From the NCBI RefSeq assembly GCF_000143415.4, contig NW_003314298.1, forward strand, positions 727,014-791,013: a DNA stretch of 64,000 nucleotides. The letters run 5' to 3'. The notes under the pieces are model-generated. The model ran no database searches. It was not told the origin of the DNA and worked only from the letters and a program-made list of their open reading frames with translations. Shown here piece after piece: positions 36,991 to 39,744 of this stretch. Origin of the DNA: Selaginella moellendorffii. Its lineage: Eukaryota; Plantae; Lycopodiophyta. Made by a program: the position numbers and the translations under genes. Numbering within the stretch: the first letter of the stretch is position 1; every line of letters starts with the position of its first letter.

Positions 36991-39744
36991 CTACCAGCCG
37001 GAGCCACCATCGTTGGCGACTCCATAGCCTTCCGGGAATCGCCCGTGAGCTCCACCAGGAGGAGACCGGCTTCGTCCGCGGCTCCGACGAGCATTGGGAC
37101 TCCGGCTCCGGCTCCTGCTGTAGCTCCGCTTCCCGGAAGAGATCCTCTCTCCATAGCCCCTCCTGTAAACGTCCCCGTTCTCGAAGCCGACAGCGCCGTT
37201 GCTGGCAACAGGAAACCTTGCAAGTGGCGCAGTAGCAGCAGCCGCGCCACCACCCCAAGAGCTTGCTCGTCTGTTACCATAGAAGCTGTTGGCCGGGGCT
37301 CCTCCGCCTCCTCGGCCACCGCCGGACTCCCAGCGGTTGTGGCGAGGCTTTCCAAAACCGCCTCGAAGTGCCATCTCTCTCAGCTCCGGTGGGACTTTCT
37401 GGTTCGCACCCTCGAGGACTTTGATCAAGTCCCTAGCGTACTTCCCGTCTTGCTCGGCAAAAAAAGTGTGAGCCAGGCCAGTGGCACCAGCTCGGCCGGT
37501 CCGACCAATGCGGTGGACGTAGTCCTCCACACCGGTGGGAAAGTCGTAGTTAATGACAACTCTGCAATACAAAGAACTCAAAAGTCAGCAGAGGGAAAGA
37601 AAGAAAAAGACAAGTGTCGTTTTGTTTCGCTTACCTGATATCTTTGATATCTAGCCCTCTTGCTGCGACATCGGTAGCGACAAGAACAGGCGATTTTCCA
37701 GCTTTGAACTGCGAAAGGACCCAGTCTCGTTCGCCTTGTGATTTGTCACCATGAATGGCCACAGCACCAAAATCTCTGCGCAGTGAGCGAGCTAGTTGAT
37801 CACACATTCGCTTTGTTGAGCAGAATATGATAATCTTGGACCCAGGCTCTTGAGTCCGAAGAATCAGCTCCAGCTTTCGCGCTTTGTCTTGAGGCGAGAC
37901 AACTTCTACGCACTGCACCGATTGTTAGCGCAAATACCAAAACAAAACAAAAGACAAAAATGGAGACCTGAGTGATAGCCTTGTTTGCAGCTAGATCGTC
38001 TGTATTTCCAATGTTCACCTGGATGGGATTCATAAGCAAGTCGCCAGCAATCTTTCTCACTTCTTTCGGCCACGTCGCTGTGTACATAAGCGTTTGTCTC
38101 TGAACAGGCACCTCATTCACGATTTTGCGAATCTGGGGTTCGAATCCCATGTCGAGCATGCGATCCGCTTCATCCAGGACCAGGTAGGAGACCTGCCTCA
38201 AACTGATCCTCCTCATTTCCAAAAAGTCGTTCAGCCTTCCTGGAGTAGCGATAACAATGTCGCATCCCCGTTCAATATCGCGTAGCTGGGGGCCTTTGGA
38301 AGCACCACCATAAACACACTGCAAACATAAAAGAAAGATCATAAACAAAACACATAACAACAATTCTTACCGTGCTCGTAATCCTGGAGGACCTCCCGAA
38401 CTTGACAGCCTCCTCGTGTATTTGAGTAGCTAATTCTCGCGTTGGGGCCAGAACGAGTACTGTTGGGCCCGATCGTGGGTTGTTCCTTCGTCGCTCTAAG
38501 TGGATAAATGCTGGCAGCAAGTACCCCAGCGTTTTTCCAGACCCCGTCTTTGCAATAGCTACAATGTCACGGTCATTCAGAGCTATAGGCCAGGATTGGG
38601 CTTGTATAGGTGTAGGTGCCGTAAACCCGGCAAGTTGAACCTGTTAAAAAAACGAACAGTATAAGTACGTTTCCAAAAGCTTCTCAAACTTGCACTACTC
38701 CCAAGCAGAAAAACTAAAGAACAAGAAAAGTAAGGCAACATCTTAACTGATGCCGCATATTGTCACAGAATCCAGTACTTAAGTTTGCACCGGCGTGAGA
38801 GGAATGCAGTGTCAGCCTGGTTGGTCCCTTCTTCCGAAGGGTCATCCTCCAACCCCGGCAAAAGAACATTGGTACACATGAAGAGCAGCACAGCGTACGA
38901 CATATGCTCCATTCTGGAGCAAATATCGCATCTGCGAAGGATAAGGGACATAGTAAGTTTTAGCCCTCTAAAAAGCAAAGTATGTATACACTAGATCCAG
39001 AAAAGAAGACAGCATGCATGCAAGGACCAAAACCAGCAGGACAAAACGTACCTCTCTTAAGACTTCATCCGGAAGACCTGCCGATTCGAAAGTTATGAAC
39101 GGTGCTGGAACGTTGGTTCCCTGAAACAGAAAGGCCAAGGCGATGTTATGAGCTTGCAACACCAAAATATCAAGTATTAATGAAAGACATACCACGATGG
39201 TTATCTCGTGCTGTCTCCTGTAAGAATCGACGTCAAACGGTGATGCCGTCGTTTGAGTCCGAGGGCGCTTGTAGGCATCCCGATCATTGTAGTCAAAATT
39301 GTCAGCATTCCGCTTGTAGCCACCCAGCGCACCCGGCACCAAGGCAGCGTTTGAGCCTCCATTTACAACCTGACATGAAGAGAAAACAATGAAAAATCCG
39401 AGAGAAAGTTATCTACGAGCAAGTGCTACCTGTGACTGTCCTCCAAACATCGAAACCGCTGCTAGTTTTGGCTGCTCGGCAACCTTACTCCCGTACAGAG
39501 AACCATTGCTTCCATTGACGTGACCATTCGCCATCGAGCTCTCTTGAAAAGCCGAACCATTCACGGAAAATCCTGGAGCACCGCTGGAAGAGACTGGCTT
39601 CACATACGTCGTCTCGTTGGACTGCGTGTTCCAGTAGTAGAGATATCCAGTCTCTTCGTCCACCAGGGCCTTCCATGGAGGAGGGAGAGTTGGGTCTTCT
39701 GGGGCATAGTGAACACCAGGCGTCGATGCCACCGGAGCCACCAT
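36991..39744 (-). CDS. WW-domain DEAD-box RNA helicase of the RH14(DRH1)/RH40/RH46 clade, multi-exon
   Basis: WW domain [32 protein letters not shown] motif [44 protein letters not shown] and HRIGRTGR, with an RS/RGG-rich tail. Confidence 0.96.
38735..38931 (-). promoter_or_regulatory. Structured intronic RNA element with an alternative 3' splice site and premature stop codon (poison exon)
   Basis: Three hairpins inside a 411-nt intron (38641-39051). A pyrimidine tract plus CAG acceptor ends at 38932, and an in-frame TGA lies at 38844-38842. Confidence 0.7.

Follow-up and report, generated by a model that had tools for sequence, protein, structure and literature searches.

The helicase gene and its long intron

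The window, which is the whole stretch of 64,000 nt analysed here from Selaginella moellendorffii, carries on its minus strand a gene for a DEAD-box RNA helicase of the DRH1/RH14/RH46 type. Its coding sequence and the parts surrounding its one long intron, with positions numbered from the first letter of the window, were as follows.

36991-39744, minus strand: coding sequence of the DRH1/RH14/RH46-type DEAD-box helicase (exon joints from RNA contigs and assembled translation)
39052-39120, minus strand: exon 3, 69 nt, ending in ...LRE, the upstream exon, spliced to the canonical acceptor as well as to the alternative one
38641-39051, minus strand: intron 3, 411 nt, GT..AG, directly before the Q-motif exon (411-nt joint in four of four runs)
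38371-38640, minus strand: exon 4, encoding the Q motif (VQLAGF...PTPIQ) and motif I, GSGKT (sequence, RNA joints, and orthologues)

The assembled translation gave a product of 676 aa possessing an N-terminal WW domain, a helicase core with the Q motif, GSGKT, and DEAD, as well as a tail rich in RGG/RS, an arrangement typical of DRH1. This product equals XP_024539300.1, the "ATP-dependent RNA helicase-like protein DB10" of S. moellendorffii, for which WW, DEAD, and Helicase_C are the Pfam domains on record. The top named homologues were plant RH14, RH46, and DB10, while no other lycophyte protein was found among the best 120 protein matches listed. In a second S. moellendorffii haplotype, the helicase protein differed at 6 of the 676 residues.

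Joints in the RNA contigs delimited seven introns of 64, 60, 72, 411, 52, 55, and 73 nt, all GT..AG, with the 64-nt intron lying in the 5′ UTR and ending one base ahead of the ATG. A first-pass annotation, made from the letters of the window, had singled out the intron at 39051-38641 as unusually long; it is indeed the sole long intron of the gene, the six others measuring 52-73 nt. The same annotation had placed in this intron an alternative acceptor with an exon start at 38931, followed by three hairpins proposed to act together as a helicase-sensing switch. The acceptor sequence, ...ccuucgcag|, directly precedes 38931.

RNA isoforms and the poison exon

RNA evidence was taken from contigs of four runs (X1, X2, X4, and X10) belonging to four studies, and it is strongly argued that these runs are RNA, because their contigs carry spliced joints. 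In all four, every intron was spliced out and the main contig lacked the whole 411-nt intron. Other contigs contained parts of intron 3, from which two further features were defined.

38748-38931, minus strand: cassette poison exon, 184 nt, frame-shifting (joints in X4; fusions in X1 and X2)
38842-38844, minus strand: in-frame UGA after 29 alternative codons (translation)

A single contig of X4 carried both joints, 39052->38931 and 38748->38640, and thereby defined the 184-nt cassette. Contigs of X1 and X2 began at 38931/38933 with 16 additional letters, which were the end of exon 3; that of X2 ran on unspliced to 38613 in exon 4 and represented an alt-3′ form. In X10, a contig covered exactly 38745-38933, ending at the alternative acceptor. 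The anticipated junction 39052->38931 was accordingly present in three of the four runs, with the contig of the fourth ending at the same place, and the acceptor is one to which exon 3 was joined in RNA-derived contigs. The 120 nt from the canonical donor to 38931 were essentially without contig coverage, and the contigs therefore reflect splicing, neither intron retention nor DNA. They show the presence of the isoforms, contig depths being unsuited to isoform ratios.

Translation from the alternative acceptor bore out the predicted 29 codons followed by UGA at 38844-38842. This stop, contained in both the cassette and the alt-3′ forms, is found 94 nt upstream of where the poison exon joins exon 4, and isoforms with a premature termination codon (PTC) are the result. 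The cassette ends at a weak donor, UCA|GUUAAG, with its GU at 38747-38746 as placed by the X4 joint and the sequence. By homology with Arabidopsis (see below), the cassette and alt-3′ transcripts are predicted to yield no helicase and to be targets of nonsense-mediated decay (NMD).

Hairpin 1 and the DEAD motif of land plants

The DEAD motif is a published structure (Sack et al. 2025, RNA Biol, PMC12218528; Burgardt et al. 2026, bioRxiv 10.64898/2026.01.23.701338), and its region had earlier been described as a non-coding sequence that is conserved (Burgess & Freeling 2014). It consists of one stem-loop, whose stem measures 19-20 nt and whose loop measures 3-5 nt, located in a long intron of DRH1/RH14 and RH46 and almost confined to this helicase's own gene; lycophytes are among the reported carriers, and it was not found in algae (Sack 2025 / Burgardt 2026). 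The first study, which covered all RefSeq-204 plants, states that the motif was present in every tracheophyte and bryophyte of the set, and S. moellendorffii was very probably within it, because the species has RefSeq proteins. The first-pass annotation had pointed to a structured intronic element reported in Arabidopsis DRH1/RH46; this was correct and the element is the DEAD motif, so that no novelty attaches to the motif itself, lycophytes included. In the window, the motif and a conserved block next to it were located as follows.

38885-38940, minus strand: DEAD motif (covariance model match, fold, scan outlier, and near-identity to published sequences)
38939-38960, minus strand: conserved block AAACUUACUAUGUCCCUUAUCC, 22 nt (similarity to liverwort introns relative to shuffles)

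Folding reproduced the first of the three hairpins at 38929-38897, with -19.9 kcal/mol and z -6.9. This is only the inner part of a longer structure at 38936-38889, of 20 bp, -25.4 kcal/mol, and z -4.4, in which an outer stem of 5 bp, CGCAG/CUGUG, is followed by 8 bp, then 7 bp, and a GAA loop. Hairpin 1 had been drawn as starting 2 nt past the acceptor, but the outer stem encloses the acceptor, the AG at 38933-38932 being paired at the hairpin base. In a structure scan of the 3-kb pre-mRNA with 45-nt sliding windows and z calculated against dinucleotide shuffles, the hairpin-1 region stood out most (z -6.9 and -5.5), and among the three hairpins it is the only one that exceeds chance.

A covariance model (R1) built from eight non-Selaginella land plants, with 19 pairs, matched 38885-38940(-) over its full length, 1-56, at 66.8 bits and E 9.8e-17. 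On this match, hairpin 1 was assigned unambiguously to the DEAD motif, and it is near-identical to the published instances from poplar, soybean, and Physcomitrium. It also agrees with the published description in its surroundings: a gene of the DRH1/RH14/RH46 type with WW domain, core, and RGG-containing C-terminus, a long intron that the Q-motif exon directly follows, a single hairpin of 20 bp with a 3-nt loop, GAA, and an alternative AG in the stem base that is used in vivo, judging from the RNA-derived contigs. The set of isoforms is likewise the published one, namely coding, alt3, and cassette exon, with a PTC in every non-coding form.

Several differences were observed. The base right after the AG is A in Selaginella versus G in all other plants examined, as seen in the window sequence at the acceptor, cgcag|AUGCGAUAUUUGCUCCAGAAUGGAGCAUAUGUCGUACGCUGUGCUGC, and in a published transcript variant of poplar, gucgcag|GUGCGAUAUUUGCUCCUGCGAGGAGCUAAUGUCGUACGCUGUGCUGCC. 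Because A stands for G, an A/C mismatch replaces a G-C pair beside the splice site, which accounts for the one non-standard pair in the match of model R1 to the window; in Selaginella, the hairpin may for this reason leak more when closed. The intron is much shorter than those of other DEAD-motif genes (411 versus 532-923 nt in eight plants). The cassette, too, is shorter (184 nt), and its weak GU donor lies in the loop of a local hairpin. For the published cassette variant of Physcomitrium, read against an aligned paralogous locus, CAG|GCAA appears to serve as the donor.

Orthologous genes were compared from Riccia, Calypogeia, Physcomitrium, Ceratodon, Sphagnum, Adiantum, Acorus, and Populus (n=8). 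The DEAD motif was found in all eight in the corresponding intron, which follows the ...LRE exon and precedes that of the Q motif, and the supposed deep conservation thus held for liverworts and mosses as well as for a fern, a monocot, and a eudicot. The DEAD hairpin was the top structural outlier of its intron in nine of nine species, Selaginella included, while other hairpins in the orthologous introns varied in position among species. In the eight-species alignment, 16 of the 19 pairs were invariant and none had changed on both sides; because these 16 never vary, covariation is uninformative in so small a set. Structural support for the pairing comes, since our own alignment barely varies, from the published analysis of 335 sequences, with an R-scape covariation E of 0.0044, and from the published mutants (Sack 2025 / Burgardt 2026). 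A metagenome scan with the DEAD pattern gave 35 loci, most of which look, from their sequences, like DNA of poplar, of legumes, or of mosses such as Sphagnum; they were informative on the block described next, though not on lycophytes.

Upstream of the hairpin, the block AAACUUACUAUGUCCCUUAUCC was significantly similar to liverwort introns relative to shuffles (p ≤ 0.005), and most orthologues, as well as further plant contigs from metagenomes, have a block of the type ACUYAY about 19-36 nt upstream of the AG. Its ACUUAC is probably the branch site of the alternative acceptor, followed by a pyrimidine tract, with the putative branch A at 38954, which precedes the G of the alternative AG by 22 nt. 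Because the ACUYAY block is kept upstream across land plants, conservation may reach beyond the one hairpin that was published. A mini-hairpin 5′ of the block, UGUGA/UCACA in Riccia and UUUGA/UCAAA in Calypogeia, was inspected by eye and rejected, its stems being too short and the number of species too low for a claim.

That the intron instead hosts a snoRNA or a miRNA-like hairpin, with the alternative splicing incidental, is barely credible. Intron length and a stable hairpin would fit such a host intron, but a scan of 34000-42000 at E ≤ 1 matched no Rfam family (the DEAD motif itself has no family in the release used), the stem is just 20 bp, and the hairpin sequence occurs within spliced, mRNA-like contigs fused to exon 3.

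Hairpins 2 and 3 and the proposed control of helicase output

The remaining two hairpins of the proposed switch, both obtained by folding where they had been drawn, were as follows.

38815-38859, minus strand: hairpin 2, GGUUGG/CCAACC and CCCUUC/GAAGGG stems with a GGAA loop (fold; chance-level)
38735-38756, minus strand: hairpin 3, GCGGCAUC/GAUGUUGC (fold; AGUUAA loop with the poison-exon donor)

Hairpin 2 had -22 kcal/mol with z -2.8 when folded alone and about -2.0 in the 45-nt scan, and hairpin 3 had -10.3 kcal/mol with z -3.4 alone and about -2.8 in the scan; values of -2.8 or lower occurred in about 3.4% of the scan windows, coding exons among them. The region following the DEAD motif, when aligned locally with the eight orthologous introns, showed similarity no better than that of dinucleotide shuffles (p 0.08-0.97). 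The support for hairpins 2 and 3 is solely thermodynamic. The idea of a three-hairpin switch was accordingly not upheld, two of its members being statistically ordinary and unlike anything in the eight orthologues and the published motif being a single stem-loop; what the orthologous introns do retain is hairpin 1, in eight of eight. A further hairpin at 38801-38757, with z about -4 in the scan, was absent from the earlier annotation.

Two candidates for additional conservation were tried and rejected. Words shared with other plants, CGGAAGAAG (Acorus, poplar, and soybean), GCAUCAG (poplar), and UAAGAUG (mosses), were not accepted as conservation of hairpins 2 and 3, because the alignments of the region after the DEAD motif match shuffles with the above p values; by our estimate, a shared 9-mer is expected about 0.4 times by chance between sequences of ~300-400 nt. 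A long-range helix of GGGGGCUGCRU with AUGCAGCACCC, seen by eye in bryophytes and the fern, showed pairing inconsistent between species.

The position of hairpin 3 gives rise to a different reading, in which a lycophyte-specific switch would have two gates and all three hairpins would take part: hairpin 3 gating the donor, hairpin 2 contributing, and the helicase remodelling several structures. The cassette donor UCA|GUUAAG falls exactly in the loop of hairpin 3, and the cassette form coexists with the donor-skipping alt3 form, as expected for a regulated weak donor. The human homologue DDX5 reportedly modulates a stem-loop at the 5′ splice site of tau exon 10 (attributed to Kar et al. 2011), which would be an analogue of hairpin 3, a 5′ splice site in a stem-loop that a helicase of the DDX5 type can open; unlike that stem-loop, hairpin 3 has neither conservation nor statistical support. 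Against this reading, z values of about -2 to -2.8 are matched by about 3% of the windows of the gene, the region after the DEAD motif resembles none of the eight orthologous introns (p 0.08-0.97), secondary hairpins elsewhere are not conserved in position, and the isoform mix is explained by a weak donor alone. Moreover, a C>A allele (plus-strand) at 38853, present in two runs, makes hairpin 2 less stable, at -18.8 instead of -22.0 kcal/mol. We regard such a lycophyte-specific switch as unlikely. The narrower propositions that structure gates the poison exon at its acceptor (the DEAD stem) and also at its donor (the loop of hairpin 3), and, separately, that the module extends beyond the published hairpin, are improbable; were two gates real, a DDX5-like helicase would have to remodel two structures, deciding between cassette and alt-3′ output.

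In Arabidopsis, the hairpin was shown to sense the helicase activity of DRH1 and to drive unproductive splicing; a reporter was co-expressed with DRH1, helicase-dead DRH1 mutants shifted splicing far less than the wild type did, disruptive stem mutants and compensatory ones that restored regulation were obtained with effects traced to the protein level, the RGG tail of DRH1 was required, and the alt3 form underwent NMD (Sack 2025 / Burgardt 2026). These experiments bear on whether the hairpin might mainly sense some other signal, such as temperature, transcription rate, or the binding of another factor. Its near-invariance, with 16 of 19 pairs fixed, is beyond what a helix alone needs and hints at sequence-specific recognition, but the weak effect of helicase-dead DRH1, the restoration of regulation by compensatory stem mutations, and the near-exclusive occurrence of the motif in this helicase's own gene argue that the main signal is the helicase, and we consider another signal very unlikely.

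Taken together, the element is, with high probability, Selaginella's version of the autoregulatory module that land plants carry as the DEAD motif in the DRH1/RH14/RH46 gene. Its anatomy, its family membership, the conservation of its intron position, and the use in RNA of the acceptor and the cassette donor are shown for Selaginella. When the hairpin is closed, the AG would be hidden at the foot of the stem, the 411-nt intron would be fully removed, and the helicase would be made. Rising helicase activity would, by homology with Arabidopsis, open the hairpin with the help of the RGG tail, which the Selaginella protein shares with the published system as an RGG-rich tail. With the hairpin open, the AG would be used, producing either the 184-nt cassette or a retained 3′ part of the intron; such transcripts would stop after 29 codons and be degraded by NMD, so that helicase output would fall in a negative feedback. 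Helicase dependence, NMD, and feedback in Selaginella are thus proposed by analogy with Arabidopsis. The original observation is in this way partly confirmed, and its interpretation partly supported.

Comparable control is known elsewhere. Yeast DBP2 is reportedly autoregulated through its own conserved intron, a finding attributed to work by Barta & Iggo in EMBO J of 1995. Like the Selaginella gene, it encodes a helicase of the DDX5/Dbp2 family controlled by itself via its own unusually long intron; unlike it, the yeast intron lies in the C-terminal helicase domain, is not known to carry an alternative splice site or a poison exon, and is said to contain an element unrelated in sequence to the DEAD motif. 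The plant TPP riboswitch (THIC) and the 45ABC motif (RBP45 genes) are other structure-gated splice sites. In contrast to systems of the TPP riboswitch type, the DEAD motif reads the activity of a protein, the helicase, instead of a metabolite, and does so with a simple hairpin, not an aptamer.

The biology of the motif has already been published, and what is added here is lycophyte transcript evidence for the hidden acceptor, the cassette form, and the alt-3′ form; a compact natural version, with a 411-nt intron and a 184-nt poison exon, which would be convenient as a minigene; a natural G-to-A change by the splice site; and a conserved, putative branch-site block upstream of the hairpin. A reading made from the letters of the DNA had recovered a real, experimentally validated regulatory RNA. 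The DEAD motif is an unusual sensor, a hairpin that reads the helicase activity of its own gene's product and throttles that gene via unproductive splicing, and its age roughly matches that of land plants.

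Sequence elements flanking the DEAD hairpin

Within the intron of the helicase gene (a DEAD-box helicase of the DRH1/RH14/RH46 type) that carries the published 20-bp hairpin known as the DEAD motif, two further elements were located:

38939-38960, conserved block AAACUUACUAUGUCCCUUAUCC, upstream of the DEAD hairpin, with similarity to liverworts
38757-38801, additional local hairpin GCCGGUGC..., with a z score of about -4.0 in 45-nt folding windows scanned against dinucleotide shuffles

Most of the land-plant orthologues of the intron had, at branch-site distance, an ACUYAY element that the block fitted; the block is absent from the published description consulted of the DEAD motif, a single hairpin. 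The additional hairpin, which was missing from the list of the first-pass annotation, sits within the poison exon (38748-38931); it was not conserved in the orthologues from eight other land plants.

Natural variant of the splice-site pair

In the DEAD-motif copies of five metagenome loci (L010, L017, L027, L038 and L043), the C opposite the G of the hidden AG acceptor was replaced by G, giving GUACGGUGUGG in place of GUACGCUGUGG, so that this natural variant breaks the splice-site pair. These loci were on metagenome contigs with likeness to soybean sequences.

Organization of the helicase locus

The 5′ UTR of the helicase gene contained an intron, and the gene calls for this locus placed one gene on each side of the helicase gene:

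39746-39809, minus strand, 64-nt 5′ UTR intron of the helicase gene
35150-36714, minus strand (that of the helicase gene), PPR-repeat gene, about 280 nt after the helicase gene
above about 40000, strand opposite to the helicase gene, RecX-domain gene, past the helicase 5′ end

The 5′ UTR intron ended one base ahead of the start codon (cag|aAUGG), and a possible second acceptor was noted in it at 39781. Elsewhere, a very AT-rich block (41650-43000, GC 16-24%) lay between GC-rich genic regions, and an inverted fragment at 31537-31834 shared 81% identity with the part of the helicase gene that encodes the C-terminus (36898-37227).

Decayed helicase copy with a second DEAD motif

A second copy of the DEAD motif was found within a decayed copy of the helicase gene:

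22154-22208, minus strand, second DEAD-motif copy (47.6 bits), within the decayed helicase copy at 21014-22953

This motif copy had broken basal pairs, lacked the CAG acceptor, and carried G, as in other plants, versus the A of the live gene at 38931, the first base of the poison exon; at the site matching the polymorphic 38853 of the live gene, the decayed copy had U. The latter was a mosaic with internal deletions and patchy identity (65-100%), which reached from the 3′ UTR as far as exons 2 and 3; next to it came part of the adjacent PPR gene, in rearranged order. The mosaic could have originated by gene-fragment capture, or by duplication and subsequent decay.
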